A DNA stretch of 64,000 bases, taken from the NCBI GenBank assembly GCA_964304625.1, contig OZ199840.1, positions 9,803,315 through 9,867,314 on the forward strand. Direction: 5' to 3'. The translations under genes were made by a program, and so were the position numbers. Of the stretch, positions 3,983-55,190 are shown in pieces. This DNA comes from Kudoa neothunni. Taxonomy: Eukaryota; Animalia; Cnidaria. Each line of letters starts with the position of its first letter. Position 1 is the stretch's first letter. The notes under the pieces are model-generated. The model had not been told where the DNA came from. It made no database searches and saw nothing but the letters and a program-made list of their open reading frames with translations.

Positions 3983-6899
3983 TTATTTCTTTTTTGTAGG
4001 CCATAAAACCTCCTATTCCTCCGATAAGGTATAATTGCAACAACAACCGACACTATAATTGCTAAACGAAAAAAAATTAAAAAAACAACAACTCACATCA
4101 CATACATTGTTTTTATTGCCTGACTCTATAAAATAATAATTACATACAAAAAATAATTATAAATAAATTTACGTTGATTTACTACCAGATGCACCTAAAA
4201 TTAGAGTTATACAATATTTCTAAATATTTAAGAATTGGATTACCTTTATCAATTTCAGCTGTACCAAATACTGTGTTATCCCTGCTGTAGTATACGGTCA
4301 AATGATAGTCGTTTAGATCCTCAACATTTTTCAATCGTAAAAGTCTTACAGCTTGGAAGGGTCGTACAATCACCTCCTCCGTTACTCATACATTTTTTAA
4401 CGGTTGGTCTAGCCACGTCGTTTGAATTAATTAACACCCATTTACATTTTGACTCTCCATCTATTCCAACTGGAAGTATGGTCGTTATCTGTAATGTTTT
4501 ATCGTCACGTACTATACTAACAAACATTTTTTTTTGTTAGATCAGTTGGGTCTTCAATTATTGGTTCTAAATTTTTACGTTTTAATAATCGTTAATGATA
4601 TATAATTTTTAATATATATTGTAAAATAATAACTCGGGGTTAGAATGAAATGAGTTTTCTTCAGAACGATCAACAGCTGTAACCAAAATTTTATATTCTT
4701 TCGAAGCGTCGTAACCTTCACTGAATATAATATTGTTACAATATGGTACTTCGGAGCATGATTTGGTATTTTTTTGATGTAGTTTCTGACGACTGTTCTA
4801 CCGTACCAGCTCTAGCAATGGAAATTTTTTTCAACATTAATTAATGATCCAGCCAATGGTGGTTGAATTGGTTTTTGCAGGACATGAATATATTGTATCC
4901 CACGATTCTCCATTTTTAACAGTGATTTTAATAAATGGGCATTTTGCGTCATTAAAACGGTGTGGGACAATTTTCCTATCACTTTAAATCCTCTGTCCAA
5001 TGCTTCCTTCGTAAAAGTAAGAGTCGAATAAGCTTTCGTATTTATAAAAATAATAGATCATTTAATTATAGTACTCGTTCTAATATTTGTGAATATAGTA
5101 GAACCATATTCTTCATATGCAACCACTTTAATATCGTAGGTAGTATTGAGTTCGAGGTCAATTAATTTCTTGGACTCCCTACATAAACCTCTACAAGGAT
5201 TACTATCTACACATGTTGCTTCGAAAAATTTGTTCATTCCTGCTATACTGACAAAGTAATCACATGTGGGTTCAGTTGCTTCGGTTCCGGGATCACCGAC
5301 AATTGCTTTAACTATGCTAGTTGAATCACCCGCAATAGGTTTTGCAGTATTAAAATTTGTGTCAGTTTTTTTATCTGAAATTATTAATTAATTCGAATAT
5401 TATGATAACTTTAATACTTGTTTGGACGAAAATATATTCCTTAAAATCTACATATTTTTTTTATAGTATTAGTAGTAGTAGTAGTAGTAATTGCAACTAC
5501 TATCATTATTGGTCGTCCTTCAGGTAATCCTTGAATAGTGCGAGTAGTATTACAATCATATTTACACCCATCCTTATTTAAACATGGGGCTATAAATTCA
5601 TTATTTTTGGTAGTATCTGCAACATAATATTTGATTTCACACCGTTCAAATGTCTTTGTTTCGCCAGATGGCGCCAATAATGGCACATTTTAACTTTACT
5701 CCGGTATTTGTCACTGATACTAGAGCATTATCATTTCCAGTTGGTTCGATGATGGCTAAAATATAATTAGATAGTTTATCTAATTATTTATACCAAATTT
5801 TTTGTATGTAAATCCTTCGAACGATCCATCCTGTTTTTTCCGATAAACTATGGTGTCTTCTTCGTATCAATATTTCTACAATTGGCTTTGTTGGAGTAAG
5901 AGTGAGTTCTACGTCGTTACAGGGGGCGTAGCATTGTTTGTCGTTATTGCCGCATTTTGATGAATAAACAGGTTTAGGATTTGCTACATCCGATGCATCT
6001 CTGATACTAAAGTGGCATATTTCATTAGGAATTGGGATTCGTAAATTTTAAGTTGTAATTTAGTATTCGCATTGGCAGATTTGTAGCTAACGTAGAATTG
6101 TGGCTTGTAAACGTCTATATTTTCTTTCATATAATAATTTGGCATGTGGTAATAGAAAATAGGATAATCGGAGCATCTCACTTCAAAATACGGGATTTTT
6201 ATTCCATATTCAACAGTATTAATATTGATAGTGTCATTAGCTTTACCACAGTCTGCTGCTTTAGGCACATCTTTGTATTTTATTCCTTTGTAATAAATGG
6301 GACAAGCGACAGGTTTGCATGTGATGGCTTCCAATTTTAAAATATTTCCGGATTTGTGGATGGTTTTATGTTTGGATCCACCAACAAAGCTAAATACTCC
6401 TTAATGTTGATAAATAATGTTTAACATACGAATTGCAAGCCCCAAAAACTTTTCCTCCCTTTGGGGAGACTCGACACTTTAACATTTCCAGCAGATGAAT
6501 CATCTTTTATATAAATGTATTTTGATCTTGGGGATAGTTTACTGTATTCCAGCTTATTGTTGGCACCAGCACAAGTCCTCACGCACATATTTGTAATGCT
6601 AGCCTCATTGCCTTCGCATGTAATGATTTCGCTAAAAATCATTTCCTGTAGCGTTTTTCTTGCATCATGCGACATTTTTTTCGTTGTCGAATATTGTGTT
6701 CCTCTCAGTTCAATATGAACTTTTACTAGTGTTACTTTCGGAATTATCTATTTGATAGAAAACTTCTCTTTCAGCAGAAATGGAACTGGTATCATCGGAA
6801 TAACTAGTATATATAACTAAATGAAATTTACTCAAATCGAACGATGAATTGTATACGCGATAAAATTATGACCAATATTAAGGAGCCTATTTTCATCAT
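3983..6899 (-). pseudogene. Cys-rich FN3-like type I membrane protein, copy 1 (frameshifted: pseudogene or unpolished consensus)
   Basis: Exon/intron layout colinear with copy 2; ATG at 6899/6896, signal peptide MMKIGSLILVIILS. Many single-base insertions in homopolymer runs break the frame. Confidence 0.8.
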
Positions 6900-9800
6900 A
6901 ATTGCAAATTGGCCTGAAAATATTAATCTGTTATTCTGTATATATTCACAGATATATATTCAATTATTAAGCTTCTTACTTAAATATAAATTAAAAAATG
7001 AATGCATTCGGATATTATTAACTATTTATCTATAGTATATATTGTCGGAAAAAATAATAATCAATGTAAAGATTGTCAGTAAAGTATTATAATAGCAGTT
7101 CCTAACGAAAATTATGAAACTAATTGGATTAAATATGGCATTGGGATTTATTATTAATGTTATATTTATTTAAGATAAAGGTTAAAATATTCTATTATTA
7201 TTTCTTGAGAAGTTTATTTTTATAATGTATAATTATTATATATTCAATTAAATATTACTTATATTATTGTTTTTCCCAATTTATCTTTTATAACGAAATA
7301 GAAAAGCTTTATATTAAAAAATAAAGCATCTTATCAAATTAGTAAAAAACATCAATTTCTTGAGGAAATTCTGGTTTTATGTATGCTTCTAATCGTTTGT
7401 GATTATCATAAAAACTGTCGTAAATTTTTTATTATTGGAATGTATTTACATCTGCAAGAAATTTCTATTTGTCAAATATCGTTCAATATGTAAACGATAT
7501 CTTTATTATTTAAATAAACCTTTCAAATTATTTATGTTTAACTCATCTTTATGTTAATTAAGGAAATAATGCCTAGTCTTTATGTAAGTCGATCTGCAAG
7601 CTGAATTTTGTAACGTATAGAGAATAGTATTATCACTCATTAGTTTTGTTTTATACTATTGTTGATATTATTCGTTTACTTATAAATATTTTTCACATCT
7701 ATCATTAATAATGCTTCATATTTAAAGAAAATGAAGCAACCTTGTGGCATTTGTCTTAATTAATTATAACTGTTGTATAGAGAAGAATAATTTCTAATTG
7801 TAACATAAAAATTATCTACTACCCCCCCAAACACACAAAATATACTTCTTGAGTCTATTTAAATAATCGATTAAATTCAAACAAATGAGGAATTATAGCT
7901 TAAATGATATCTATGGATTTTTACAAGTTGATATAATATATTGATTTTCCGTAAGGAAAACTCTGTTCTAATCTTATTCTGGAAAAATTAGGTCATTTAC
8001 GACTATAACATCGGCTTTATCTAAAAAATACATATTAAATTTTTTTTCTTGAAATTAATCTCAAATTTAAATAACCACGAAATTATATTTTTTGTTTTAT
8101 GTTTAGAAACACTTAATAATTTAAAAAGAAACAGAATTTCTAAAAATTTGAAATACAGAAATTAAAAATTAAATATAATTAATTTATATTTAATGATTTT
8201 CAAATCGGCATCTATTAAAATATTTCCAGATTATACGTATGCAATACAAACATCTCAAACCCACAAGAACAATTCAAATGACTGTTTTCCACATAAACCT
8301 CACATTAATACTTTTTCGGAATGTTATGTTAGTCAGCTTTAGATTATCTTAGACAGAAATAGAATTATTCGAATATTTGAAGTATATTAATGTTGATTTA
8401 AAACAAATAAACTTTATAAATTCCCATTTTTTCTAAAAAAATTTAAAGTTTTTTAAAAAATTCTTTAATATTAATGAAATTATTTTTCACAACAAAATTT
8501 GGAACACCAATGAACGTTGTAACGAGAAGATTCAAAACTGAAATAAATTCTTAAAATTATAATTTAAAGGGATTCAATTAATTTTTGGGCATATATCTAA
8601 GATGTTAAATACATAATTTACTTTTTTAATTATCTATTGTAAATATACAAGTTATAGATTGTCAATTTCGTTCCTAATGTGACAATAGTATAGATGAGCA
8701 ATATCATCTAGTCAATAGACAGTTTGAATCAATTGACGTATTATAATTTAGTTTGTTTTTGTTAGTTGCGATTTCTTAGGTACCGGATAATCCGATCGTG
8801 CTCTGGCTATATCTCAGGTAAAGAATATCTCTAAATTATTTCATCTATTTTATTCATATTTACATATAAAATAATATTTAATTACCTCAGTTTTTGTAAA
8901 TTTTAGAAAAATTGGTAGAATAAATTAACAATAATTGAACCATCATTAATTAAACGATAATATATTTTAATTATCGTATATTTTTTAATATTCCGATAAA
9001 TAACCAAATTATAAATTATGAAAATATAGATAATTAAAAAAATATCCTTTTTTTTGCTCATATTTCGTATTTTAACAAGAAATATAATATATGAAGACTC
9101 AAACTAGCGAAGAAGGTATCGTAAAATATAACAGTTATCATATGCAGAAAATAAATTTCATATATGATTCCAGTTTTTAGAGTTTATTTATATAATAAAC
9201 TCTTTTTATGCCTTAATGTTTGTCAAATAACTTTCTCATTGCTTTCCAATTGACTTTAATTTCTTCAATAGAATTGTGAGGTTTAATATATTCAACAAAA
9301 ATAATATGTTAATTCTAACTTTACATATATGTTATTCTATGATATTTTTAGATTTATCACTAATATTCAATTTTTTCCTATGAGATTCTAAATCATTTTA
9401 TGTGTCAATGTTTGTCATTTTTATTGGTGAAATGAATATTAAATCAACAGAAGACTTGTAATTATCATTATCATTATTTGATGCATTCATGGTTTTAAGA
9501 AATGAAGAAAAGCAAATAGAAATCAACGTATATGTGAGGCATTACAACGGAATACAACTATACTACAGTCATCGCATAAGGGGATATAGAATCTGAAAGT
9601 GAATTCTCACTTGAATTCTTTTACAAGCCTTTTCGGTTGAATCATACCTATAGCAATGTGGTGGATTAAATTTTTAACGTGCGATCTGATAAACGCTTAC
9701 CAAAGAAATTTTGTCACGCGCAAAGTCCTGAAAAATGCAGACGAAAAAATTCAAAATACTTCCATAAGCGTATTCAAAGATATAGCAACACAATACAAAG

Positions 9801-10569: not shown

Positions 10570-13500
10570 TACTGTAATACCTCCTTATAAACTGTATTTT
10601 TGGTCAGACCATTTGGAGAAAAAGAGTATAAATTGTGTTTGCAACTTACCCTGGAGAAGACGACATACAACTGCCAATGAGAAAAACACGGTTCCTCTTA
10701 ATATAAACCAGCAACTTTGAAGATTTGTCACTGGGCCTTATTTATGGATATTACAAGATATGATTTGATGGGAAATTGCAGTCTTTTAAAATTAAAGGCG
10801 GTGTCTGAACGAATAATCGGAATATATACATCTTCCCCTCTGGCACAGCCTGTTACGATAACGGCCTAAATAAGATAAGACATTAACGTCTTTACCACTA
10901 ATCGGGTGCTGTTATACAACCTTGGTGAATCCAAATTTCTTAGCAATATAATTGGAGTGTCTACCTTTAGGAGAAGTTTGTGTGAAGGAACCCTCGATAG
11001 CTCTAAAGTCGAGACTCTAGACCGTTGAGGAATTCAACGGGAAATTAATACATTGATTTTTGTCCACAATGGTGTCATATGATTTATACTCTGTAGAGTC
11101 GCCTGGAATAAGATGGATCAATCTATCATTGATTTTGTTTACGGATTGGTTTGTGGGGGTTAAGATAGCTCGTTCTGACAGTCAATTAGAGTTGTAAAAT
11201 TTTTGTTGTATTTCTGGAAAAACACGGTTTATCTAATCATCCATGGACGAAATCAAGTTTGCCAGGGAACATAGAGGTATGCATCCATTGTGCCCAATCG
11301 TAAGTTGATCATTACCTATCCGTGGTATTTCTGAAGCGAATTGATTGGTTCCTTCTTTCTTTGCTGAGTTGCGCTCTCATATTGGTGATGGGATGGTGGG
11401 TTTTAACTCTCGCCCATAAGGAAGAGAACTTTAGGGAATATTTTACTTCGTCATATCTTGTATCTCTGGGTATTACATGTAAAGTTTGGCGAAAATTGCC
11501 GGACAAAACCATTTTGATTCCGCCATATGGAATGTTTTTGTCTGTTTTATCCCTTATCGTTCTATCTAAAGCTTTGAAAACCACTCTGTTTGTCATTGTG
11601 CATTCATCCCATATGATGGCCGTACATCTAGCCAACAATTTAGACAAACCTGTCCCCTGCTGATTGCACATACGACGGTTTCATCATCCTTAATCGCGAT
11701 TGGCAACTTAAATGTACTATGGGCGACCCTACCTCCTGGAAACAATTTGGCTGCAATGTCCTAAGATGCAATAGCGAGTACAATTTTAGATCCCTTCTTA
11801 ATTCGACCAATAAAATAGTTGTCACAAATGTCTTATCTATACCACTAGGTGCATCAAGAAAAAAAACGTTACAATTACCTATATTGTTATAAATACGTAT
11901 CAACACTGTTTCGAATGCAAATCTTTGGTCAGGCGTCAGTTTCGGCTTGTTTATTTCTATAAAATCAGATAATTCTTCAGTGTCGTAGGCTAACTCTCTT
12001 TGGACTTCGTTTGAAAGAGGGACGCCAAATGTTCCATCCAAAGGAAGAAATCTGTGTGAATTTAACATTCCTCCGCTCATTTGAATTAAAGTTCTTTTTG
12101 TGTCAATTAGGGCATGTTAAAAATCTCAGAATTGAAAACCTAGTTTGACATTAAACTGTTTTGTTGCAGTTGATATCAGTAATCTTCCGACATATCTTCT
12201 TTAAAAAGTAACCAATGTTTGTGAGGCTGGCGCGTTTCGCAACTTTTGATCAACAGTGCGAATAATATTCGTAATTGACGTGGACTGTTTATAAGAGCCG
12301 CTTCTCTTAATGTACATTCCCAGTGGTCGTCTCCCTCCATCTAACCATTTTTAATGCACGCTTAAAGTTATGTTGGGTATAGCTGACCGTTAACCTTCTT
12401 AAGATCGTCAAAACTTTTAGGTCCCTTTACACAATGGAGCAACATCCTCAAATAAAAACATTCTTGATGTGCAGGGTGTACACTGTAAACTCTTCTTATT
12501 GTAGAGTCAAATCGTATGACTGGATGGCCTTTAACTGGACATCCTCTTTTTCTCCGACGCCAACTATTATCATTCCATACGTAATAAGATGGGACTTGAT
12601 GGTAGAGGAGACTTTGAGCGAATTCGTCATTCTGGCATAACTTGAAAAAAGCGGTTAATGGCGTATCCCTTTGATTTAGTAACCGATTCAACAAAGTTTC
12701 GTCGATGAAATGAATACGCCGACCGTTCTCCAAATGGACGCTTAAATGCTCTATGGTTGGAAGATGATTATGAATATTGAAGCCTAATAACCTCCAAAAT
12801 CCTTCGTTACTGCTTATGTAAAGACCAGCCATATAATTTGAAACTTTAACCAAACGATCTCTTTGATTAACAACAAACATGGCGGCAACAGAACCTTTGT
12901 TTACACACTTGCACATATATTTAGTGGACTTGACTGAATGGCAATACATTACATAAATATAGGAATTGAAAATCTTCGTCAACAAAGGACAATAGAGAAC
13001 AATCCAACTATTATCTATGATGACTTCCCCACCGTTGTTCAGATGGATTGACACCTGAAAACCCCCATCTTCAGCTTCAGGTCGTCTTATTTTGTAAACA
13101 GAATATCTATCAGTGTCTGTCTGGGAGAGTTTTTGGTGTATTTTCTCTGATCAATCATGCACGGGCTTTCTGGATTCGACGCACCACAGGGACTATGTAC
13201 CATAGTTGTTTTTACAATCTGGAAAAATACTGGATGTACACCTGGGTCTAGTAATTCGCTCAATATGAATTGGTCGATATCATTGGAACACAGTTTCTGT
13301 TTCATCCAGACCAATATATGAGCGTGTGGCAACCCCATTTCTGCCACTCAATAGTATACATAACACTAAAATTCACCAAAAATCTTCAATACATAAATTC
13401 AATTCATCAAAATTTTAATTACAAGTTGAATACTCTGGCAAATATATCTGGTCTGTCTTTAGGTGCTTGGCCATGAAATAACTCTTCATTAATTTCGCTC

Positions 13501-14890
13501 CAAAATGGATTTCATGTGAATGTTAGAAATAGATCTGACCCTCCAAAACATCGAACGTAGATCGTGGCATTCTGCATCTTCACGGTCATATAGCGTGATG
13601 AAACTACAAAAGTCGATGGCAAAATATACAACCGTCCCCGCCCATTTATTTCACCGTCGCTACGATTGCAATTCATTAAATTGATATAAGATTCAACATG
13701 AAATTCAAATTGTTTGGTTCTGATGAACCAAAGTCTCTGATTCCATCGTCGCAAGCATATCTACAGCATATTGTTGGAATAATGTCCAAAACTGATGAAG
13801 CATGTTAAAACTATTTTCCCTTACCATAAAATGAAAAGAATAAAAATCCTTACATGAAACACTTTTGTTTGTGCCAATCTATGGAATATGAAAATAGTAA
13901 CCATCTTGACCATAAACATTAATTAGTGGATATCGCAATACATCATACGATCTGTGTGTTTCGCTTATTCTTTGAAGTCTGTTGTCCTTACTGCTCGAAA
14001 CAATTTCCCTCCTAGATTGCTGCTCATCCGATATTACGATAGCCATCTCATTGTAAGTTGGGGTGTTGTATCTTCTCTCATGTTCTCCCTGTGGACGCTC
14101 ATCAGCGTTTATAATTATATTAAAATTAGAGGATGGGTACATTTCTAAAACATACTTAAAACTGTGGATGTAGTTATTGTGACTGTGTAACATATCTTGA
14201 AGCGCTAAAATAATATCATACCTAAGCTGGGGGTACATGTTGGATCGACTTTGAGCTTACAAATCCATGTCTTGTATGAAATATATTTGCAAGAATTTCG
14301 GTTGCTTATTTTCAGAAGGCGATATCGATCCAATTCGATGACAAACTTGACTGTGAACCTTAAAAATAAGCATGAATCCGTCCCTACTATTTACGTTCAC
14401 TCCAAATGATGTTATCTGGAAAGCACAGTTGTATCTTTAGATATTTTGTAGGAAGTGTCTGTAGAATATGAGGAGGAACAGGTAGTGCGTCCAAAATAAC
14501 CTTACCGCCGGCACAACACATATCCGCGAATTCGTTTATTCACTTCTTAGAACGGCATTTTGGGAAAATTTTCGACATTTTCCAAATTGTGATATTCTTT
14601 TCATTTCCATAGTTGTAGCAGAGGTCGTAATGTAAAGCGACCATATTCCAAGTATCATCAGACATACTTCGCGATTGTTGACCGAATAGAACAGGAGTGT
14701 AGGAAAATTCAGGTACAAATTTACTGCCTGATCATGTGCTGTGCTTATTTATAGGTGACACTGCAGGACTCTGTTGAGTCGCCTCACCTACACGTCGATT
14801 TCTATTGCTTACACTATTTGTTTCTCGTATTCGTTCTCTTTGCTCGTCGGTTTCTCGTGAAAGGCGTAAACGTCGGCAATTCCGTCGTAA
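10570..14890 (-). mobile_element. Decayed autonomous Helitron (Rep + Pif1 helicase)
   Basis: Rep motifs GLPHAHIL (HUH) and KYMCKCVNKG, SETHRSYDVLRYPL, ECFYLRMLLHCVKGPKSFDDLK; helicase motifs FFLDAPSGIDKTF, IIWDECTM, LSGNFRQTLHVIPR. Many stops and frameshifts; termini not resolved. Confidence 0.92.
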
Positions 14891-15527
14891 TTGTTGGTGT
14901 GTATAGTCAAAAATAAGAATAGCTCTGTAAACAATTAGGGATACGATCGAATGGTATTGTTTACTTTCCTACACCTTATTCACAAACAAATGTTTTGAGG
15001 GAGAAAAGAAGAAACTTCCAATGCATAATACTAGAGTACCAGACGCAAAACGTTTATATTAATCTGATTTGATGCAGATGGTTTTATACGAAATAATAGA
15101 GTCAATGAAATTAATCGATCGATAAAAAAATTATTGGATTATGACATTCAAACGCTTTTCAAATTTTCAATTTACTTGATTTCATTTAATAATAATTTTA
15201 ATGTGTTTGTTTATTGTGTAAATTTGTTTTCAATATAACATCTATACACAGATTTATATTCCATAACCTACGCCCAGGTTGCTCTAATCCTCTAGGTCAC
15301 CTGAAGGTAGATTTAGATGAAAACATAAAACACTACAAAATACAACTAAAAATTGTTCTATTCTTTTTAAATTTTAATCATCTCTATTCGAACGTGAACC
15401 TTACAATTCCTAATAGATTAAGCTTTAAACAGTCCTATAACTTTTTTGAAATTCACCATTTCTTAGAACACACAATTTTCGGGAAATTCCGAAGTTTGTA
15501 CTATATATATATATATCTAGCTCTCTA

Positions 15528-16212
15528 TCTATATAAATGAAGTAGTAACGTCCGTGTGTGTACGTATTTTTCATTCTTTATAGAGAGACATATCGCTCCA
15601 TTTGAGCAAAAATATGGAAAGGTAAATTTTCTTTTAACACATAAAAATACTTAAAAAATTATAAAAGGTTTGCATCCTACAAAATGACTAAAAACATTTT
15701 CACGTGGTATGATTGGTTTGATTTAAGGGTTTATGCAAACATATCGGTCATTTCATTAAGATTATAAAAAGTTAATTTAAAATGTACCATAGCGTTTATT
15801 TCATAATTTTAAAAAGTAACTTAGTAATTGAATCAGTTCAAATAAGGAAGGTAATATTAGGTTATGTAACTAAACTTTAATATGAAATTTATTTGTTGGT
15901 GTTTAACAACATTAATCCTTTTCAAATGATATGATTTAGAGATTACTGTGAACAGCAAGGAGAAAACCGATTTTTAAGGAGCTCTAAAGAGGAAATTTTA
16001 AACACTCATTAGTGTTTATTCATTGTAAAAATATTAAATAAGGTTCATGCGTCCAATTAGTTAAATAAATCATCCGTTAATTTGGTAATCTTTGTACTAT
16101 TTATCTAAATACTCTTAATTTATTTTGAACATTAAACGATCTTGGCTAACTCATTGCGTTAGTTTACTTGGCTGGGAAAGGAAGCCCACGCGAAGGGGGT
16201 CTTTTACGCTAT
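15528..16212 (+). mobile_element. Non-autonomous Helitron-like element
   Basis: 5' TCTATATAAATGAAG..GTCCGTGTGTG next to a TA-rich tract; 3' GC-rich imperfect hairpin gcccacgcgaagggggt followed by CTAT (degenerate CTRR). Confidence 0.4.
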
Positions 16213-16366
16213 TTTAACACATATATATAATTATTTTTTTATAAAAATAGAATCTATTCATTTTCTAAAAATTTTAAATATTTGATAACACTACATCACA
16301 ATTAATATTGAAATAAAATTAACAAGTATTAAGAAGATAATTAAATTGAACTAAAAGCGATGTTAA

Positions 16367-17724
16367 CCCTCCTTGTCTGAAGCGGGTCCCATTGCGGACC
16401 CCAATTTCATTATTTTTCACGTTACTCTGAAATGAACTGCTGATTTCTTAACTGTTCCAGTAGAGCCGCTTTATGATTAGAAAGTTTGCATACAAATTAT
16501 AATTTATTTTCTAATTTAAAAACACGCCTCAGGCATTATATTTATTCATAATCCGATTATTTATTCCTACAGAATCTCAAGAAAAATGGTCCATTGTATA
16601 CATATTAACTTATTTCACTTATTTATATTTATAAATTTATTTAATTGATTTTAAAGCCATATAGACGTAAGGTTTCTATATACTTCGACTTAATAAGGGA
16701 TTAGAGAGGATTAATCTGTACCGCACTTCTTGGTTGGTAGGCTCTTTTTTATCTAAAGAATCTCTCTTTACCAACAATAAACTAATCCATGATTCATTAT
16801 ATGAAATATAACTATTAGAACCTTTGTGTATAGATTGAGGATTCCGTAATATTTTTTCGGTGAAATATAAATTGATAAGTATAAAGTATTTGGAAAATAA
16901 TTGTTCTATTGCAAATTTATTAAAATAATCAATAGGACCTTTCAATAATTTTTAAAAATAGTCAGAAATAATGGCTATTACTGTTTATATTGAGTATATA
17001 ATTGAAGTTAAAGCATTGTGTGTTTATTAATTATTGATGTTGACATGTATGTGCTACGAATTATTCGTATACAAGCGTTAAACCTATGTTCCAGAAGTTT
17101 GCAAATATGGATAACAAAATATTTCAACAACTTAGATTCTTTCAAAATAAATTCTAAAATGTAATCTTACTGACTCTTAAATATGCAAATAAATTTTAGG
17201 AAAGTTCGTAAAAATGTAAATAAATTACTAAGCAATACACATTTCATAATTTTGTTATTATACTTTTGATAGAATTAAAACGATATGAAATTTTCAAACA
17301 CTGCTTTTCATGAAAACTCAGAGTAAAGTGCATGCACGACTACATTTTCTACTTCCTAAACAGTCTGATAATTTTTACAGAACGGCTCATAGTTGGGCCT
17401 ATGTTTGATCATCATCTATTAATTTTTATGGAACCTAATCGGATAAATTAGATATTTATTTCATTTAGACATCTTCGAAGCATTTAGTGCTTAAATTTAT
17501 GCGCTGATTTCACTACATTTGCCCGACTCAATAAATTCATCTTAGCTCATATCTGCATTTCAAGCTACTGGATAGAGTTAGATTTTTTTTATACTTATAA
17601 ATGCCTTTGAATAACATCATGTTAGTTTCGTAATAATTGATGGCGCTTAAGACCGACTTAAAAGGGGGTCCCCAATGGACCCGTAGGCACACGCGTAAAT
17701 TTTTCGCACGCAATGCAGGTAGGG
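16367..17724. mobile_element. Non-autonomous piggyBac-like element immediately downstream of copy 2
   Basis: TTAA|CCCT ... AGGG|TTAC termini, with subterminal GGGTCC..GGACCC palindromes at both ends. Confidence 0.6.
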
Positions 17725-34927: not shown

Positions 34928-37900
34928 TAATAACAATAAGATTCGTGTACTTAAAGTTTATTCCTGCCATCAAATCACATTATTTTAACTAATATAAATT
35001 ATTTCGGATAAATAATAATTTAAGGTATTCTTACATAATAAAACACACTTCATTATTTTTTTATCTCGCTTTAACTATTGATTACTAAATATGTTATGTA
35101 TTTAATACCACTTAAAATATCTTTAATATTAAATATATTTACTTTTACAATATGTTGGCATTGGAATTGAAAAACTATAATAATTTTACTAATAATTATT
35201 GAAAACAATTATATTAATAATTTAAGCGACGAAGAAAATATTAAATAAAACTTTCTTAAGTCGATACTTATAAACTTGGTCTTATAATAAGTCTAGTTAA
35301 CATAATAAATTACACAACAAAAATTGTAACCAATTCATTATTTTATTATATTAAATATAATAAGGTTAATCTTCAAATTTTCAAAATATTTCCATCTAGC
35401 TGCACAAATAAACCTTATGAATGTTTATTAAAAAGATTTAAACTGTTAATCATTAATAAAAGATGGCTAAGTACATATTTATTGGCAATAAACTTGTAAT
35501 TTTTTACTTATTTTTATAATATTTTATCACGATTAATATTATAATAATACTAGAAAGTATTAATTAGGCTAGTATAAAATATTAAATGGAGTATTAATTA
35601 AAATGTTTAACGATAAAAGATAGCCTAAACTTTTAAGTAAACATAAGTAGGAAGACTTGGAATTAGTTTTTATAGAAATATTGGATAAAATAAGCAATTA
35701 TAAAATATTCATTTAAATTAGTTATGAATCATGATAAATAATATTATTCTTTATCTACTAATAAAATGAATATTTGTATCATTTTTACTTATTTCTGTAG
35801 GCCATAAAACCTCCTATTCCTCCGATAACTATAATTGCAACAACAACCGACACTATAATGCTAAACGAAAAAATTAACAAACAACTACTCACATCACATA
35901 CATTGTTTTATTGCCTGACCTATAAAATAATAATCACATAAAAAAATAATTATAAAATAAATTTACGTTGATTTGCTACCAGATGCACCTAAAATTAGAG
36001 TTATACAATATTTCTAAGTATTTAAGAATAGGATTACCTTTATCGATTTCAGCTGTACCAAATACTGACCTATCCCTGCTGTAGTATACGGTCAGATGAT
36101 AGTCGTTTAGATCCTCAACATTTTCAATCGTAAAAGTCTTACAATTCGGAAGGGTCGTACAATCACCTCCTCCGTTACTCACACATTTTTTAACGGTTGG
36201 TCTAGCCACGTCGTTTGAATTAATTAACACCCATTTACATTTTGACTCTCCATCTATTCCAACTGGAAGTGTGGTCGTTATCTGTAATGTTTTATCGTCA
36301 CGTACTATACTAACAAACAATTTTTTTGTTAGATCAGTTGGGTCTTCAACTATTGGCTCTAAATTATATTTTTTAGTAATCGTTAATGATGTATAATTTT
36401 TAATATATATTGTAAAATAATAACTTGGGGCTAGAATGATAGAAGTTTCTTCAGAACGATCAACAGCTGTAACCAAAATTTTATATTCTTTCGAAGCATC
36501 GTAACCTTCACTGAATATAATATTGTTACAATATGGTACTTCGGAGCATGATTTAGTATCGTTCGATGTAGTTTCTGACGATTGTTCTACTGTACCAACT
36601 CTTGCAATGGAAACATTTTCGACATTAATTAATGATTCAGCCAATGGTGATTGAATTGGTTCTGCAGGACATGAATATATTGTATCCCACGATTCTCCAT
36701 TTTTAACAGTGATTTTATAATGGCATTTCGCGTCACTAATCGGTGTAGACAATTTTCCTATCACTTTATATCCTTTGTCCAATGTTCCCTTCGTAAGAGT
36801 AAGAGTCGAATAAGCTATCGTATTTATATAAATAATAGATCATTTAACTATAGTACTCGTTTTAATATTTGTGAATGTGGTAGAACCATATTCTTCATAA
36901 GCAACCACTTTAATATCGTAGGTAGTATTGGGTTCGAGATTAATCAAGGTCTTGGACTCCTTACATAAACCTCTACAAGGATTACTATCTGAACAAGTTG
37001 CCTCCACAAATTTATTTTTTTCTGCTATACTGACAAAGTAATCACATGTGGGTTCAGTTGCTTCGGTTCCGGGATCACCGACAATTGCTTTAACTATGCT
37101 AGTCGAATCACCCGCAGTAGGTTTTGCAGTATCAAAACTTTTGTCCGTTTTTTTATCTTAAATTATTAATGAATTCGAATATTATGATTATATTGTTACT
37201 TGTTTGGACGAAAATATATTCCTTAAAATCTGCATAATTTGTTATAGTAGTAGTAGATGCAACTACTATCATTATAGGTCTTCCTTCCGGTAAACCTGTA
37301 ACCGTGTGGGCAGCGGCACAAACGGTAGGGCAATTGGTACCGCTACCTGATGTGCAAGTTGGAGCTTTGGTATAAGAAGTTCTAGTAGTATCGGCATGGT
37401 AGTATTTAATTGCACATTCAGTAAATTTTTCGACATTACCATCTGGCGCGAATAATTTCAAATTTATTTTCACCCCTGCGTCCCCCCATTGTTATTAGTG
37501 CATGTTCGTTTTCACTTGGTTCGACAATGGCTATTAAAGCATTAAAAAAGTTTTACTTAATTTTTTACCAAATTTTATATATTTAAATCCTTCAAATGTA
37601 TCGTCTCCTTGTGTTGCTAATTTGTGGTGTCTTTTCTGGACCAATATTTCAACAATTGGCTTTGTTTGATCAAGTGTGAGTTCTACGTCGTTACAGGGAG
37701 CGTAGCATAGTTTGTCAGTCCCTCCGCATTTTGAGGAAAAGGCAGTTGGTTGTGCAGATGTAGCAGCTGGCGCATCCCGGATACTAAATAAGCATATCTC
37801 ACTAGGAATTGGATTAGTAAATTTAAGTTGATATTTAGTATTCGCATCCGCAGATTTGTATCTAACGTAGAATTGTGGCTTGTAAATGTCAATATTTTCT

Positions 37901-39990
37901 TTCATATAATAGTTTGGCATGTGGTAGTAGAAAATCGGGTAATCAGTGCATCTCACTTCAAAATAAGGTATTTTTACGCCATATTCAACCGCGTCAATAT
38001 TCTGTCCACTTGCAGATTCCGTACAACTAGTTCCTTTAGGCACTTCTTTATATTTTATTCCTTTATAATAAATTGGACAAGCTGCTGGTTTACAAGTTGT
38101 GGCTTTTAACCTCAGTAAATAATCATCATGCGTGGATGCCGCTATTTTTGGATCCACTAATAGTGCTAAGAATTCATTAATAATGAAAATTACCCAGTTA
38201 TCATACGTATTGCTAAACCAAACACTTTGGCTCCATTTTGAACACCATCCGCTTTTAGGTCACTTGCAGATGCTGCATCTTTTATATAAATATATTTTGA
38301 TCTGGGTGAAAGCTTGTTATATTCCAAAATATTGTCTTTCCCAGCACAAGTTCGGATACACTTATTATTAACGTCATTTTCATTACCTTCACATCTTTCG
38401 AAATCTTCATAGGTTGTACCCAATGAATTTTCTCGCATTATTCGGCATTTTTTACTGTTTTGATAATCCGTTCCTTTCAGCTCGATATGAAATTTAAAAT
38501 TGCCGACAGTGGCCTCATGTATCTGATAATACACTTCTCTAGTAGGAGCAGATGCTGAAGCGTCAGCTGAGTAACATTCATTCGAAACTGAACAATAATT
38601 ACTAAGTAAAAGATATAATTAATTTACGTGAAAATATAATGAGAAAAGAGTGAAGAATTATATTCGGAGTCATTACAAATTAAACCAAAAAAGTGTATCC
38701 GTTATAATATCGATTCCTTTATTATACTTCGTGATTCAATTCAAAGTATTCTATGAATACTTCCGCAAATCATTCATATCTTCTCTATTGTTAATAATCT
38801 CAGATATGACTTTAGATATGATTTGTGATAAACTATATGAAAATTCATTAATTTATTTTGTAAATGTTGATTGTTCTTTAAATGTTTGATCTATTTTTAA
38901 TATTTATGACATAATTTTACTGCAAAAGATTATACAATTTTATCAACCATTAATTTTTTATTTTCTGCCTAGTTAAACTTTATATAAAATTTTTTATTGA
39001 ATACGTGCATAAATATAATATAATTAAACAAATTTGTGTATGATTGCCTATTTATTTTTTTGTTAGATACGATTTATCCTAAAAATAATATATCTTGTTT
39101 CATTAATTAGAAGCTAAAGATATTGTTAGGTACGATTGTCTCGTTTATTTTAATTACGTATCGTTTTGTTAAATAATCCACATTTTTGCCTATTTTTTTG
39201 TTGTTATATGCATTACCTTTTCATAACTAACTAACTAACGAAAGAGCAATAGCACATCAATCATTAGAATTGTCATTTTATTATTTAATCACAATTAAAT
39301 CAAGATATATATCCACGAATAATAATTCGAATAGTCAATTATATCTCTTAAGTATATTTAGATAAAATTCTTATTAGTATTTAAAGAATAAATATTATCA
39401 TAAATAGCTATATTTTAAACTTTATAAAAAAATTTAGCAATAACTTTAAAATTCAACGAATAATATAGAATAATAATATATTTTAATAATTTTAACTTCG
39501 AATTTATCAAAAATGTTGCAATCGTTTTTTCGTATATATTAACAACATAAAGACAAACAATTTAATCAAACAAAATAAAATGTTTTTTAAATAAATTTCT
39601 TTTAAATTATAAATCTGTTTAAAAAGCTTATTAAGGTTTCGAATAATGTATTTATACGTATTTTTATAATTAGTTAACTTATTATTTTAATTATTTTTAA
39701 TAATTTTTAACACAGACGTTAACAATAAAAGTAAATGTAAAAACGTGAATTTTCTTAATTGCTCAAAGTAGCATTATAATTTCTTTTTCAATAGATCCCA
39801 TTAGGCTAAGTTAAAAATTCTACCTTCAGCCTCTGTACAGAAAATATATAATAAAAATTTGTATCATTATGAATACTGTCATCAATTTAAGAAAAAATAT
39901 AAAAAAATAATCCAATTATTTAGAATTGAAAAATGACTTACTATATTTTTATTTTCATAAATTAAGTCATTTCTACGAGATTTCCTGTTT
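34928..39990 (-). repeat. ~5-kb segmental duplication unit (copy 4 with flanks), paired with ~51447-56690
   Basis: Both the downstream (~850 bp) and upstream (~1.3 kb) non-coding flanks align nearly base for base with those of copy 5. Confidence 0.9.
35785..38673 (-). CDS. Cys-rich FN3-like type I membrane protein, copy 4
   Basis: Same exon structure; N-terminus MTPNIILHSFLIIFSLSNECYS; C-terminus ..LIGGIGG-type TM helix then FMAYRNK*. Confidence 0.9.
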
Positions 39991-41125: not shown

Positions 41126-44107
41126 TTATTTCAACTTCCAAAAAGCGAAAATGTATACCAACCTAAATATGTGTAATTAGAAAGTATTAGTCATTACTTA
41201 TCTAATGATTTACAGCGCTATTATTGCGACCCCAAAAACTGAGAATATAGTAATTATCAAGTATCCTAAGCAGAGCAATTTAGATAATTGTTATTATTCG
41301 ACGATTACTTTTAGCAGTTAATCCCATGAGTCTTTCCGTAATAAAAACATTTCTAAAAAATATCATTATATTTTTAGAAAAATTATCAAATTTTATTTAT
41401 ACAATATTAAATTAATTTTTATATAATACAATAAATGAAATTACGAGTTAATAAATATAGAAGGAACGAATTTTTCATTTTTGATGACCATAAAATCTTC
41501 TGGGCTAATAAAAATTATAGAAAAAAACTAATTATTGTCACTACATAACAAAATATGCACAACGTCCTTCTTTGTTGCAATACTGTTATATTGTTTAGTA
41601 AAGTTTTCGCAAATTAAAAGATTACTTGATTTTTCCCACACACAACGTTGTTGCAAGAAGTAAAATTTTTGTATTCGGGCTCGCATACTCCCATTACACA
41701 AAACTAAATATAGCCGAATTCACATTGATTAAATTAACATCATTACTATTCCTTTAGGACATTTTATATTTCTACAATTATTTCTATTTAAGTCCGCATC
41801 AGTGCATTTGTTATTGAGACACATCTAATAGATAAAAATTTTATTTAGAATAAATCGACAAAAAATGTTACTTTATTTTCACCACACTTATGGCCGTTTG
41901 GAATTAATCCAAAAATAGATGCAGAAACATTTTTTACATCAACTCTATAATTGGATTAAATTTTTATTAATTTTTTTATTATTACACGCACGATTCATCC
42001 TCTTTCGTAGTTCTGTAACCAAATCCGCTCCATTTAGTTTCATTGTTCGCTAAGCAGGAAAGGACGCCACAATATGATCGTCTAATAAAGTTAATTAATA
42101 TTAAATAAGAATCTTATTCTACTCAGTTCTTTCATTATATGGAGTTAGATCGTAACTGCCTCTCCTGTCCGTTAGTTCGTTACACTTTGTTTCGTGAGTA
42201 ATTTTCACTATGAGTCCGGTTAATGTTCCAAAAAAAACATCGTAACAAATGCACATACTAGAATTATGTTGGATTTTACATTGTTGGTTCGCATTTGGAC
42301 ATATTCCATTAGCACAATATGCCTGAAAATAATATATAAAAAAACTCTGAATTATAGTTGTCTACTAACATTGTTAGAGCGACAAGGTGTTCCATCTGGC
42401 TTGGCAACTGTCATCGGGCACTAAATAAATTTTCTTTTATATTACGTATCGCATATACATATATGCACATATGGACTATTTCCCAAACATTGTATTTCAA
42501 AATTGCATTCATCAGCTCTACGACACACATGATTTCTTTTAAACTAGATAATAATTATCACAGTTTATCGACAACAAAATCCATCATAACATAAATATGG
42601 TTACTTTGCAGGAAGAACAACACTCACCTGCGGAGCACTCTGCTCCAGGTTTAAGTTTGCATGTTGTCATGTCGCAGCATTTGAATTCACCATTGTTGAC
42701 ACAATTAGCCTCAAACCCACAGTCGCACTCCTCGCCTGGGTCTATCATGCCGTTTCCACACACTTGTAATACAGGATGGTTGACGTTGTTCTAGGAAATA
42801 TTTGATGGAATTATTTATTAAATTACCAATCCATAACATATATTTAATCACAAGTAGAAAGTCATTTTCATGATATTTCTCAAGGTGTTTATTTATCATT
42901 TCGAAGCTCTTTTCACTAAATGCTGTTGGATATGGCAAGTTTATTGGCCTAAAACCTCAATAAATGACACAACTCATTTCATTAATATATACCATGGGCC
43001 ATACACAGAACGCATAATACATCCGTATAGTTCATCGAGACATTTGCTCTCTAAAAATATTATTATTTATGTTTATTACATCCATATTTCTTCACTAATT
43101 TTAAAGCTTTAACTTACCTAATTTTTCAACATGTGAGCAACCCATTAGGTGGCCTAATTCATGAGAGAATGTTCTATGATCCATTTGCCGGTCATATTGT
43201 TCACCTCGTAATATCTGTTTGCAGGGTGAGTCCATTATACAACAATTGACATTAAACCTTAACAAGGGATACACCGAATGCTGGAAGTGTATTGGGATAA
43301 TATCTTGATAAGCCAACATTTGTCGTGCTTTCCCAATAATCTCGATAACTAGGTTCAAAATTTTCTACTGACTTACACCGAAACAAATTACACGAACATT
43401 AAATGATATCCACTATTGATTGAGGATTTTTCAATGAAATTTAGAAAGTCACGGGCCATCATTACCAAGTTACGGCCCTTTTCCTCGAAAGGGGTCCAAT
43501 CGAATGACTTTGCTATTATTTTTATGTTGTGCCATGCAAAAGACTATATTTTCGTTTAAAATAATTGATTATCATAAAAAGCGATAAATACCTGCATTGA
43601 TCTTACTACCGTGTCTCTCATATAGGTGGGTCTTTTATCATTAATTATAAGCTAGAGCATTTGATAAAAGAAAATAGACCATGTTGGTACCGTGCTCAAA
43701 CCTTTATATATGTTTATATGAACGTATCGAGGTTTATCCATTCTTTTAATGTATCTAATATTTGAAGGCAACTAAAATACGTAATAATTTATATGTTCAG
43801 CCAACTATTCACTTGATATTTGTTGGTAGCATCTACAGTAAAAATTAAGTTCAAATTCAGAATTTATTAGGGAAGTAAAAAATTAAGAAACCTTTTTTAG
43901 TTATTGAAATAAGAAAAATAAAATTTATAATGTTAGATAACATTATAATACAAACGTTTTCTTATTCGTTAAAGTCTTTCTCAGTAGTTAATCCGAAAAT
44001 CATGGGTTTACCTTAACTGTCCTACAATCAGATCAATATATTTTTGTGGTTTTACCGATAAAAAATATAGTGAAATGAAATTGATAATAATTCCAACATA
44101 AGCATTG
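41126..44107 (-). CDS. ADAM-family metalloprotease-disintegrin, multi-exon, membrane-anchored (5' end uncertain)
   Basis: Zinc motif [11 protein letters not shown] (43131-43163), CIM Met-turn, disintegrin [16 protein letters not shown]...[25 protein letters not shown], Cys-rich region [14 protein letters not shown], and [31 protein letters not shown] followed by WKLK*. The first exons could not be joined cleanly. Confidence 0.88.
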
Positions 44108-45498: not shown

Positions 45499-45502
<4 letters not shown>

Positions 45503-45537: not shown

Positions 45538-45542
<5 letters not shown>

Positions 45543-46506: not shown

Positions 46507-48581
46507 CCCTCCAACACCTTTGGGGTGAAAAACACCCCAGATTTTTTTCGGCTTAAATAATAGGAATAAATATATTTATTACGGATGTGTAATACTAATG
46601 ACATAAAACCTATAATTATTCCAAAATCTTGAGGTTTTTAAAGTAATTACATGAATTCACCCGCGACGTGGTTATCTAATATAATAAATGCGCTCTCCTT
46701 AAAATTTGATAGTGTTGAAATGAGCGGTCTTAGTGAGTATAATGACGATTTATGTTCATCCGGCAGCGAATTCGAGGATCAAATTTCAGAAGAATATAAA
46801 ATTAGTGATGATGAAGCTGAAGCTGAAATTCCGGAAGCACACAGCAACGTGTTAACAAGCAAACGCAGAATTACATGAAGCCTATCCAAACCACCTACAA
46901 CTAAAACATGCCAAGAAAACATTATGAATTCTTTACTCGGAGCTACAGCTTATACGACATCCAAAATACTATACCTGCTAGATTGTCTCTTGTTTTTCAA
47001 TAATGATATATGACATCAAATTATTTCATTCACCAACATGTTTGGAGTACACCGTTTTAAAGAAAACTGGATTAACTTAGATCTTGTGGAATTTAAAGGT
47101 TACCCTGGTCTTCTCCTATTAATGGCTACACATAAAGACCGACAAGAGCCTTTATGCGAGCTCTTCAGCGTAAAAGGAGGAAAGGAGATATACAGAAAGC
47201 TTTTTTCATTCTATCGATTCACTCAAATCGCTCGGGCACTCCATTATGGTGATTTTAATACACGACTGGAACGAAAAAAAGTTGACAAATTTTGCCCCTT
47301 CTGTGATGTATGAAGTCAATGGATTGATTTATTACCAAGATGTAACCGTAGACGAGAAACTAGTTTCGTTCAAGGGGAAGTGCTTATTTCGACAGTACAT
47401 GCCGATTAAATCGACAAAGTATGGCCTGAAGTTTTTTTTATTAGCCGATCCAGTGGCAAACCATGTCTGTAACATCAATATATATCTCGGGTGAAATAAC
47501 TACGAAACCATTCGACAATGCGGATTGGGTGGAAGTGTTGTTCTTTCACTGTCAACATCACTATTCGATTCAGGTAGGAATGTTGTAGCAGACAATTTTT
47601 TTTCGTCATCCTCCATTGCGAAAAATTTTTTCAGAAAAAGCTTACGTTCTTGGGAACAGTTCGGAAAACCAAAAAGAAGATACCTCCTTATTTTCTTCCC
47701 TCAAGAAAAATGACCTTCTACAGTAGTACTTTTGTGTATTACGGAAAATTCATGCTGACTGACGTCTTATGTTTGTAATAAGTCAGAAGCGGGAACTCTG
47801 TTGACGAGTGGTACTGTTGATGATTCTGTTAGCGACGAGTTAACTAAGTGCAAGCTCCAAGTGATTCTAAATTATAACTAAACGAAAGGGAGAATCGATA
47901 ACGTCGATAGGATGTTAGCGTCGGTTTCTGTACGCAGATTCACAAGAAGATGGCCTCTAATAATGTTTTTTAACATGGTGGATTTATCTCTAATCGACGC
48001 ATTTGCATTATTTAAGGTTATTCTTAATGATAGCACCACAAATAGGTGTAATTTTTTGAGGCAGATGGCAGAATAACTTTACATTCCCTTATTGACACAA
48101 AATTCGTCCGAAAATAATGTCATCCAGAAAACATCTAAGAAAATTCTCTCCCCGAAAAAGAATCCACCTATGAACTCCAAACAATACAGATGTGAGTACT
48201 GTAAGCGAAGTAAAGATAAAAAAAATAAATGGTGCCAGAGATGCTACAGATATTATTGTTTAGATCACTCCTCAATTAATTGTTTTGGTTGCAATAAATA
48301 AAAATATTTTTTGTTACATTTTCATTAATACGTGTATCAAGTTAATTATTTTTGCAAAAATCTATTTATAAACATTAAGTTGACTGATAATATCCAACGG
48401 TATTTTACGAACACTTGTCGATGTTATTACGAAAAGATCTAATGCTTGAAACTAACACATATTTTCCTCCGTTCTCTTCCGGTGATTTTTGTATTATTCC
48501 AAAATTATGATCATTCGATTTATCTAAGTATTGTCGTACAATAAAAATGTGGTTGTTTTACACCCCAAAAGTGTTCGAGGG
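46507..48581 (+). mobile_element. Full-length but decayed piggyBac transposon
   Basis: TIRs CCCTCCAACACCTTTGGGGTG / CCCTCGAACACTTTTGGGGTG. Transposase remnants VTVDEKLVSFKGKCLFRQYMPIKSTKYGLKF, GRNVVADNFFSS, TKGRIDNVD, RRWPLIMFFNMVD and a C-terminal Cys-rich finger. Confidence 0.93.
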
Positions 48582-52303: not shown

Positions 52304-55190
52304 TTATTTATTTCTGTAGGCCATAAAACCTCCTATTCCTCCGATAACTATAATTGCAACAACAACCGACACTATAATGCTAAACGAAAAAATTAAAAAA
52401 CAACTACTCACATCACATACATTGTTTTATTGCCTGACCTATAAAATAATAATCGCATAAAAAAATAATTATAAAATAAATTTACGTTGATTTGCTACCA
52501 GATGCACCTAAAATTAGAGTTATACAATATTTCTAAGTATTTAAGAATAGGATTACCTTTATCAATTTCAGCTGTACCAAATACTGACCTATCCCTGCTG
52601 TAGTATACGGTCAAATGATAGTCGTTTAGATCCTCAACATTTTCAATCGTAAAAGTCTTACAATTCGGAAGGGTCGTACAATCACCTCCTCCGTTACTCA
52701 CACATTTTTTAACGGTTGGTCTAGCCACGTCGTTTGAATTAATTAACACCCATTTACATTTTGACTCTCCATCTATTCCAACTGGAAGTGTGGTCGTTAT
52801 CTGTAATGTTTTATCGTCACGTACTATACTAACAAACAATTTTTTTGTTAGATCAGTTGGGTCTTCAACTATTGGCTCTAAATTATATTTTTTAGTAATC
52901 GTTAATGATGTATAATTTTTAATATATATTGTAAAATAATAACTTGGGGCTAGAATGATAGAAGTTTCTTCAGAACGATCAACAGCTGTAACCAAAATTT
53001 TATATTCTTTCGAAGCATCGTAACCTTCACTGAATATAATATTGTTACAATATGGTACTTCGGAGCATGATTTAGTATCGTTCGATGTAGTTTCTGACGA
53101 TTGTTCTACTGTACCAACTCTTGCAATGGAAACATTTTCGACATTAATTAATGATTCAGCCAATGGTGATTGAATTGGTTCTGCAGGACATGAATATATT
53201 GTATCCCACGATTCTCCATTTTTAACAGTGATTTTATAATGGCATTTCGCGTCACTAATCGGTGTAGACAATTTTCCTATCACTTTATATCCTTTGTCCA
53301 ATGTTCCCTTCGTAAGAGTAAGAGTCGAATAAGCTATCGTATTTATATAAATAATAGTTCATTCAATTATTGTACTCGTTTTAATATTGGTGAATGTGGT
53401 AGAACCATATTCTTCATATGCAACCACTTTAATATCGTAGGTAGTATTCGGTTCGAGATTAATCAAGGTCTTGGGCTCCTTACATAAACCTCTACAAGGA
53501 TTACTATCTGAACAAGTTGCCTCCACAAATTTATTTTTTTCTGCTATACTGACAAAGTAATCACATGTGGGTTCAGTTGTTTCGGTTCCGGGATCACCGA
53601 CAATTGCTTTAACTATGCTAGTTGAATCACCTGCAGAAGGTTTTTCAGTATTAAAATTTTTGTCAGTTTTTTTATCTTAAATTAAAGATGAATTCGAATA
53701 TTATGATAATATTGTTACTTGTTTGGACGAAAATATATTCCTTAAAATCCGAACTCTCATTTATATTACTTTTGGATATCACTAACGTGACCGCTCTTCC
53801 GTCCGGTAAACCTGTAACCGTGTAGGCAGCGGTACAAACGGTAGGGCAATCGGTACCGCTACCTGATGTGCAAGTTGGAGCTTTGGTATAAGTATTACTG
53901 GTAGTATCGGCATTGTAGTATTTAATTGCACATTGAGAAAATTTTTCGACATTACCATCTGGCGCGAATAATTTCAAATTTATTTTCACCCCTGCGTTCT
54001 CCACGGTTATTAGTGCATTTTCGTTTCCATTTGGCTCAATAATCGCTATAATAGTATTAAAAAAATATTATTTTTAATTTTTACCAAATTTTTTATATTT
54101 ATATCCCTCAAACGATCCGTCTTGTTTTTTCTGTATTCCATGATGTCTCCTCTGGACCAATATTTCAACAATTGATTTAGTTGGTTCTAGAGTGAGTTCT
54201 ACGTCGTTACAGGGAGCATAGCATAATTGATCAGTTTCGCCGCATTTTGAAGAATATTCTGCGTTATCTTGAGTTGTAGCACTCGACCCATCCCTGATAT
54301 TAAACAAGCATATTTCACTAGGAATTGGATTCGTAAATTTAAGTTGGTATTTAGTTTTTTCGGTTTCAGATTTATATCTAACGTAGAATTGTGGCTTGTA
54401 AATGTCTATATTTTCTTTCATATAATAGTTTGGCATGTGGTAATAGAAAATCGGGTAATCAGTGCATCTCACTTCAAAATATGGTATTTTTACGCCATAT
54501 TCCACTGCGTCAACATCACTTCCATTTGCAGAAGTCGAACAGTTTTCTCCTTGAGGCACTTCTTTATATTTTATTCCTTTATAATAAATTGGACAAGCCG
54601 CTGGTTTACAAGTTGTGGCTTTTAACCTCAGTAAATAATCGTTATGCGTAGATGCCCCTATGTTTGGATCCACCAATAGTGCTAAGAATTCATTAATAAT
54701 GAAAATTACACAGTTATCATACGTATTGCTAAACCAAACACTTTGGCTCCACTTTTAACACCACCGTTTTTTAGGCCGTCTGCGGATACTTCATCTTTTA
54801 TATAAATATATTTTGATCTGGGTGAAAGCTTGTCGTAATCATGCTTATTATCAACCCCAGCACAAGTTCGGATACACTTATTATTAACATCACTCTCCTT
54901 ACCTTCACATGTTTGGATTTCATCGTAGTTGGTACCCAATGAATTTTCTCGCATTATGTGGCATGTTTTACTGTTTTGATAATCCGTTCCTTTCAGCTCG
55001 ATATGAAATTTAAAATTGGCGACATCGGCCTCATGTATCTGATAATACACTTCTCTAGTTGGAGCAGCGGATGAAGCGTCAGCTGAATAACATTCATTTG
55101 AAACTGAACAACAATTAATAAAATCAAGTATATAATCAACTTACGTGAAAATATAATGAGAAAAGTGTGAAGAATTATATTCGGAGTCAT
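52304..55190 (-). CDS. Cys-rich FN3-like type I membrane protein, copy 5
   Basis: Same exon structure; N-terminus MTPNIILHTFLIIFS; the 268-aa ORF is identical to that of copy 4; C-terminus FMAYRNK*. Confidence 0.9.

Follow-up and report, generated by a model that had tools for sequence, protein, structure and literature searches.

The stretch of DNA described here (the window, 64,000 nucleotides, nt) belongs to the myxozoan Kudoa neothunni and corresponds to positions 9,803,315 to 9,867,314 of contig OZ199840.1 in assembly GCA_964304625.1. Comparison of the window with itself revealed five related stretches of ~2.9 kb, all on the minus strand and sharing 68-93% DNA identity, which form a tandem array of genes for candidate single-pass surface proteins. 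With GT-AG splicing each gene resolves into 10 exons, and copies 2, 3 and 5 are open, coding for 816, 820 and 825 amino acids (aa), respectively; these predicted splice models rest on conservation of the GT-AG borders across the paralogues and in a second species. A first-pass annotation of the window had described five same-strand, 10-exon paralogues of ~820 aa with introns of ~40 nt. Number, strand and exon count of the genes agree with that description; integrity holds for three of them, copies 1 and 4 being broken as assembled, and the introns measure 38-104 nt. The genes and the exons of copy 2 are as follows.

3983-6899, minus strand: copy 1, a 10-exon family gene with its frame broken by 27 extra single bases relative to its haplotype partner, probably an uncorrected read at the contig start
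17888-20744, minus strand: copy 2, intact
20744-20711, 20670-20299, 20258-19668, 19629-19303, 19259-18960, minus strand: copy 2, exons 1-5
18917-18528, 18461-18141, 18091-18070, 18023-18006, 17963-17888, minus strand: copy 2, exons 6-10
23982-26890, minus strand: copy 3, intact, ~60% identical to the other copies throughout, with a 12-residue tail and apparently unconverted
35785-38673, minus strand: copy 4, 10 exons, its frame shifted once within the G run at 37482-37487, through a read error or a recent break
52304-55190, minus strand: copy 5, intact

The first seven introns are all in phase 1 and are spaced at ~100-130 codons (198 for exon 3), and the 3' end of each gene consists of micro-exons of 22 nt and 18 nt followed by an exon coding for a 22-residue hydrophobic helix. 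This membrane helix carries a GGxGG motif and precedes a tail of 3-12 residues, which in most members amounts to 3-4 basic residues; the same end structure was found in the other family members read, in agreement with the single-pass topology and near absence of a cytoplasmic tail claimed previously. Small residues in the stalk would allow a glycosylphosphatidylinositol anchor in place of the helix, an option made less likely by the length of the helix and by the basic tail. At the other end of the protein a signal peptide is predicted from hydrophobicity. The sequence upstream of the array genes is of three different types.

Modules of the predicted proteins and extent of the family

The predicted ectodomain holds seven groups of four cysteines, and its layout is given below with copy 3 as the example.

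26857-26890, minus strand: exon 1, start of the predicted signal peptide
26082-26395, minus strand: exon 3a, a family-specific four-Cys domain present once per gene and the most conserved part
25095-25394, minus strand: exon 5, a four-Cys module resembling fibronectin type III (FN3), with the EF-loop Leu and strand-F Tyr
24243-24563, minus strand: exon 7, the membrane-proximal four-Cys module, with a predicted seven-stranded FN3 fold
24116-24203, minus strand: micro-exons 8 (22 nt) and 9 (18 nt), a Ser/Gly/Thr stalk conserved in fish-gut relatives
23982-24075, minus strand: exon 10, transmembrane helix with the GGxGG motif and short tail

The Cys-rich, disulfide-bonded ectodomain of the first-pass annotation finds its counterpart in these seven modules, although cysteine makes up only 3.5-3.7% of the residues and neither CXXC nor CXC motifs occur. 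The FN3 fold was obtained by modelling for the exon-7 module alone, for which a 25-row alignment gave seven strands with a predicted local distance difference test (pLDDT) score of 88. Structure searches with this model returned FN3 domains nearly throughout the top 50 (best Z 8.7, root-mean-square deviation 2.6 over 86 residues, 5-17% identity), and Foldseek matches were likewise mostly FN3 (best E 1.6e-3). The cysteines of this module lie at the start of strand C, at the end of C' and, for the remaining two, in the insert between C' and E, and a 1-4 and 2-3 pairing appears probable. For exon 5, 9 of the 15 members matched the Pfam fn3 profile (PF00041) weakly, with a best E of 2e-4, below the gathering cut-off of that profile (17.3 bits for member 1 versus 25). 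Of the FN3 signature residues, the EF-loop Leu and strand-F Tyr are kept and the strand-B Trp is absent. Exons 2, 3b, 4 and 6 have the cysteine spacing and a late Leu/Tyr motif in common with exons 5 and 7, and probably share the FN3-like fold; the profiles of exons 5 and 7 showed no significant match to each other. The exon-3a domain is distinct from the FN3-like modules, and its model was poor (pLDDT 37). A viral fold library yielded generic FN3 only, and a search for structural look-alikes in the Atlas gave nothing usable. A cadherin nature of the modules was discarded in view of the phase-1 exon pattern, the weak fn3 matches and the fold search, which led to FN3. In copies 5 and 4, intron 6 (52878-52943 and 36359-36424, minus strand) is 66 nt long and stop-free, with a weak GTTATT donor, and its retention would place 22 extra residues between the last two modules. 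Retention in frame was rejected, since the intron is stop-free only in copies 4 and 5 and one partner gene and its length is not a multiple of three in distant members.

A genome-wide count of the family, a check proposed in the first-pass annotation, was made with three exons as queries. The best 150 of 413 candidates for exon 5 all had E<=7e-18 and 149 of them were stop-free; for exon 3a the best 150 of 297 candidates reached E<=1e-20 (150 stop-free), and for exon 7 the best 150 of 321 reached E<=4e-28 (148 stop-free). Family members occur on all three chromosomes, and merging the search lists by eye gave ~215 distinct loci, distant subfamilies being counted by position only. The family comprises at least 150 members and probably about 300, less haplotype duplicates; identical-score matches at distant places (C1:16.85/16.89 Mb and C3:0.05/2.80 Mb) may be haplotype duplication too, and counts made in this assembly include both such duplicates and read errors. 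The array itself belongs to a subfamily of about 21; continued upstream, it most likely comprises about seven loci, of which four are represented by two versions each. It is thus one of many arrays in a family of ~200-300 genes, and not the one special locus that it had been taken for.

The published K. neothunni genome, from a parasite of yellowfin tuna, has 40.2 Mb with an N50 of 12.0 Mb, three chromosomes, a circular mitochondrion, 5,316 predicted proteins, 46% repeats and residual haplotype duplication (PMC12239612). The assembly searched holds 40.26 Mb in three chromosomes together with an 18.2-kb contig carrying highly divergent mitochondrial genes, in keeping with the compact-genome, probably parasitic animal suspected at first. 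The sole match to 18S was a 3' fragment joined to internal transcribed spacer 1 and 5.8S (C2:5.426 Mb), obtained with a stricter filter by which full copies were possibly missed.

No named protein matched the family among sets of 1.84 and 5.8 billion proteins, which returned only unnamed metagenome fragments, the exon-sized queries being blind to full-length kin in the 5.8-billion set; the expectation of a family without a clear orthologue among known receptors was borne out in these sets. A sequence search of the PDB gave a best E of 0.0034, a scan of JGI metagenomes gave no family match, and the hit P0010 was spurious, a match to a repeat. Seven relatives were traced to a single assembly, ERZ28624939, and one distant member to run SRR33849685. 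The study code of ERZ28624939 suggests that this assembly comes from the work of Riiser et al. on codfish-gut metagenomes (PMC7054092). The metagenome relatives retain the exon borders, the micro-exons and the helix and represent several subfamilies; one fish-gut relative is 60-69% identical to the subfamily of this array and at most 61% to other K. neothunni members. The presence of several diverse family members in a fish-gut metagenome points to a myxozoan that went unrecognised there, and the likely source is a fish-infecting species. No description of the family was found in the literature searched, whose coverage was incomplete, and fibronectin is not mentioned in the K. neothunni genome paper (PMC12239612). 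Taken together, these data indicate a real, very large and lineage-restricted family of myxozoan surface proteins, apparently undescribed so far.

Haplotype differences and segment exchange

A 47-kb contig lying just upstream between two 200-N gaps repeats positions 1-44.6 kb of the window at 94-99% and is most likely the uncollapsed second haplotype. A true tandem duplication of 44.7 kb is disfavoured, since the repeat is a contig of its own, set between two gaps, and its end coincides with the start of the contig that carries the window. The features on which the comparison of haplotypes draws, besides the genes, are the following.

1-44634, no strand: stretch present twice in the assembly; the partner contig lies on C3, 47,258 to 201 bases before the window, and provides probable allele pairs for copies 1-4
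1001-7000, no strand: error-rich contig start with 50 one-sided single-base extensions
15400-17650, no strand: two dispersed repeats lying between copy 1 and copy 2, ~7% different between haplotypes
41126-44107, minus strand: gene for an ADAM-type metalloprotease, lying between copy 4 and copy 5, used as single-copy control

The coding DNA of the two versions differs by 5.4% in copy 1, 7.0% in copy 2 and 7.7% in copy 4, and the probable alleles of these copies are 88-91% identical as proteins, with exon 4 as low as 76%. Copy 3 differs from its partner by 0.9% in DNA (98.6% protein identity), and the controls between haplotypes gave 0.2% for the ADAM gene and 1.0% for the spacer at 27-35 kb. 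The comparison covers two haplotypes. The allelic and paralogue diversity foreseen in the first-pass annotation is therefore present, and is produced by segment exchange, as set out below.

Several observations show where this variation comes from. Sites that differ between haplotypes have both states present in other array loci in 59-80% of cases, as against ~20% expected for random changes, and the allele differences are clumped along the copies. The nearest neighbour switches along the gene (recombination test, p<0.0005), and long coding tracts are identical between loci (666 nt between copy 5 and copy 4, 621 nt between copy 5 and the partner of copy 4). Moreover, copies 2 and 5 show a synonymous divergence (dS) of 1.0-1.5 in exons 2-4 and of 0.09-0.29 in exons 5-7. 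Copy 3, which has ~70% DNA identity to its neighbours, is without a close neighbour. Because the allele differences lie mostly in states shared with neighbouring loci, and copy 3 hardly differs between haplotypes, the variation is generated by ectopic gene conversion between close neighbours. The exemption of copy 3 implies that the exchange needs close homology, and the low dS in exons 5-7 of copies 2 and 5 suggests that the constant base of the protein is made by conversion as well as by selection.

Two of the copies are broken as assembled, and for copy 1 the defects are most likely those of one uncorrected read and not of a pseudogene. Single-base extras are one-sided in the first 7 kb of the window (50 versus 0), homopolymer extensions make up 71 of the 76 such extras over the whole duplicated stretch, and the extras continue into the flanks of copy 1, which have <0.2% substitution. 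The window begins at the contig start, directly after a 200-N gap, and once the breaks were masked no stop codon was left in copy 1. With the HiFi depth of the assembly at about sevenfold (PMC12239612), this pattern supports a read error and, together with the stop-free masked frame, disfavours a pseudogene. Copy 1 is mosaic even though it probably represents one molecule, which argues against assembly chimeras as the origin of the mosaics.

Selection on the exons was estimated by parsimony, with dN/dS values of 0.36-0.58 per exon and with changes and indels concentrated in loops, and by a codon site test (M1a versus M2a, own implementation, columns beside gaps removed). Exon 3 alone gave a positively selected class (omega 3.2 at 3% of sites, p=6e-4), and near-neutral sites account for 29-42% of exons 2, 4 and 6 and for 16-23% of exons 5 and 7. 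These estimates suggest that the genes are functional and loop-variable, under mostly purifying selection, and that diversifying selection is weak and restricted to exon 3. The diversifying locus of the first-pass annotation is thus upheld as regards segment exchange, but less so as regards selection, and the repeats between the genes are equally polymorphic. The two dispersed repeats at 15400-17650 are abundant, recurring with 80-86% identity in dozens of places, and gave 256 candidates.

Neighbouring elements and candidate functions

The ADAM gene is divergent and has a zinc motif at ~43135-43165, disintegrin and Cys-rich exons and a membrane helix. No evidence ties the ADAM gene to the family: it was not found beside other arrays, and a role as dedicated sheddase has no support, since a close match exists only here and on the partner contig and there are 11 matches in total as against hundreds of family genes. 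A decayed Helitron-like element at 11300-14970 (minus strand) includes a PIF1 helicase (Pfam E 3e-25), with two short patches that differ by 6-8% between haplotypes. Transposase remnants of ISXO2/IS1595-like, Tc1-like (two) and piggyBac-like DDE_Tnp_1_7 type lie at 1928-2338, 32350-34210 and 47014-47491. The stretches 57163-59030 and 62490-63190 contain unassigned coding pieces that match no Pfam family, along with a simple tandem repeat in which an open reading frame of 214 aa is false.

The reading tentatively preferred, with a probability of roughly 0.45, is that the family serves as a variable coat on the parasite surface facing the host, with duplication and ectopic conversion supplying new variants. 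Its products would be type I membrane glycoproteins in which six disulfide-stapled FN3-like modules and one family-specific domain stand on a short stalk without a signalling tail, their surface location, splicing and disulfide pairing being predicted. The family, to which this array belongs as one of many, would have grown by tandem duplication and be continually reshuffled by ectopic conversion between close neighbours. Such conversion would keep the membrane-proximal half uniform in most of the array and make mosaics of the distal exons, so that alleles and paralogues would vary in the outer loops while sharing a conserved frame. The members on display would then differ from one parasite cell, stage or genotype to another, blunting host recognition. 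True antigenic variation, with one or a few of a few hundred FN3-scaffold proteins expressed per cell and variants made by gene conversion, is a narrower proposal and seems unlikely; if true, an animal parasite would in effect possess its own natural library of FN3-framed loops, for binding or as decoys. Several points weigh against a variable coat. The subfamilies are old, a fish-gut relative being nearer to the subfamily of this array than to other K. neothunni members, and such age would suit specialised receptors no less than interchangeable antigens; nearly all listed members are open, no silent pseudogene archive like that of the trypanosome VSGs having been seen. The fish stage of Kudoa lies inside muscle cells, where it is partly hidden from antibody. 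Five of the six exons are without a positively selected class, and recombination can inflate the exon-3 result. Finally, the dispersed repeats are as divergent between haplotypes as the genes, so that conversion may be general in the genome and not targeted, and no dedicated system need lie behind the shuffling.

Some of the same observations bear on other functions. An adhesin or receptor repertoire for host ligands (fish or annelid cells, or matrix), co-expressed or stage-specific, whose diversity would widen the binding range instead of serving escape, is possible though doubtful: FN3 rods are typical adhesion scaffolds, the subfamilies persist across species, exon 3a is strongly conserved, selection is purifying and nearly all listed members are open, but hundreds of members and ~10% protein difference between probable alleles exceed what a fixed set of ligands would need, and a ligand motif was not found in the family. 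This repertoire and a variable coat are not mutually exclusive. A structural or glycocalyx role is rather improbable; on that view, duplication in DNA rich in transposons and a generally high rate of ectopic conversion would have enlarged and scrambled the family with no selection for diversity. The equally polymorphic repeat DNA, the fit of M1a to five of the six exons, the position of the arrays among Helitron, Tc1, ISXO2 and piggyBac-like remnants and the 46% repeat content of the genome (PMC12239612) would agree with such an origin; neutral expansion, however, would leave many pseudogenes, whereas 148-150 of each best 150 matches are stop-free, a second organism also has a multi-copy family, and the variation, with its indels, clusters in loops. 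Very unlikely is a self-recognition code between parasite cells or genotypes, in which allele-specific homophilic binding as in Hydractinia Alr or clustered protocadherins would serve cell-in-cell development or spore assembly. Cnidarian ancestry, the clustering of single-pass proteins, the domain-per-exon layout and the high allelic difference (PMC9546547 for Alr) speak for it; against it stand the 200-300 loci, as compared with 18 genes plus 11 putative ones in Alr, the lack of a signalling tail, modules in which no V-set or I-set domain was found, and an FN3 signature opposite to that of Alr, with Leu and Tyr kept and the strand-B Trp absent.

About two thirds of the ancestral genes have been lost in Kudoa, yet a single surface family, which goes unmentioned in the genome paper (PMC12239612), appears to take up roughly 4-6% of the present gene number; the allele comparison shows how diversity is made in this family. 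For marine myxozoans, a cause of damage to fisheries and aquaculture, the family offers concrete candidates for the basis of immune evasion and host recognition, and its conserved membrane-proximal half could serve diagnostics or vaccines.

Comparison with known systems

The FN3-repeat receptors and adhesion proteins (fibronectin, RPTPs, ROS1/Sevenless, CD45, cytokine receptors, DSCAM) have the same seven-stranded FN3 fold (Z 7.5-8.7) and phase-1 modular exons. The family proteins are nevertheless only 5-19% identical to them, have no orthologue among them, lack a cytoplasmic domain and carry a pattern of four cysteines in which the insert separating strands C' and E is stapled. Trypanosome VSG and Plasmodium var are antigen families diversified by gene conversion, and the present genes are like them in being mosaics made by segment exchange, with a conserved membrane-proximal and a variable distal part. 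They differ in having no homology to either, in being intron-rich and almost all open, with neither an expression site nor a silent archive seen, and in an exchange that looks homology-driven and also affects repeats.

The first-pass annotation had pointed to Hydractinia Alr and Giardia VSPs as analogues; membership in either group is not supported. Alr is likewise cnidarian, clustered, single-pass and polymorphic, with each domain on one exon, and also holds an FN3-like fold with extra disulfides (PMC9546547); the high allelic polymorphism of Alr has its parallel in copies 1, 2 and 4, less so in copy 3. However, the FN3-like ECS of Alr has the strand-B Trp and lacks the EF Leu and the Tyr corner (PMC9546547), whereas the present family has six FN3-like modules that keep Leu and Tyr, no Ig domain found, and hundreds of genes on all chromosomes, and the cytoplasmic tails of Alr, often with ITAM or ITIM, contrast with the 3-12 residues of the members read. 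The VSPs are defined by >10% Cys and more than five CXXC/CXC motifs (10.64898/2026.02.11.705288), which separates them from a beta-sandwich family with 3.5-3.7% Cys and neither motif; switching is a shown feature of VSPs in Giardia. The resemblance lies in the general design: the VSPs of Giardia and other diplomonads, and the 18 VSP-like genes of the myxozoan Sphaerospora molnari (10.64898/2026.02.11.705288), likewise form large families with a signal peptide and a disulfide-bonded ectodomain, held by a conserved membrane helix with a very short basic tail.

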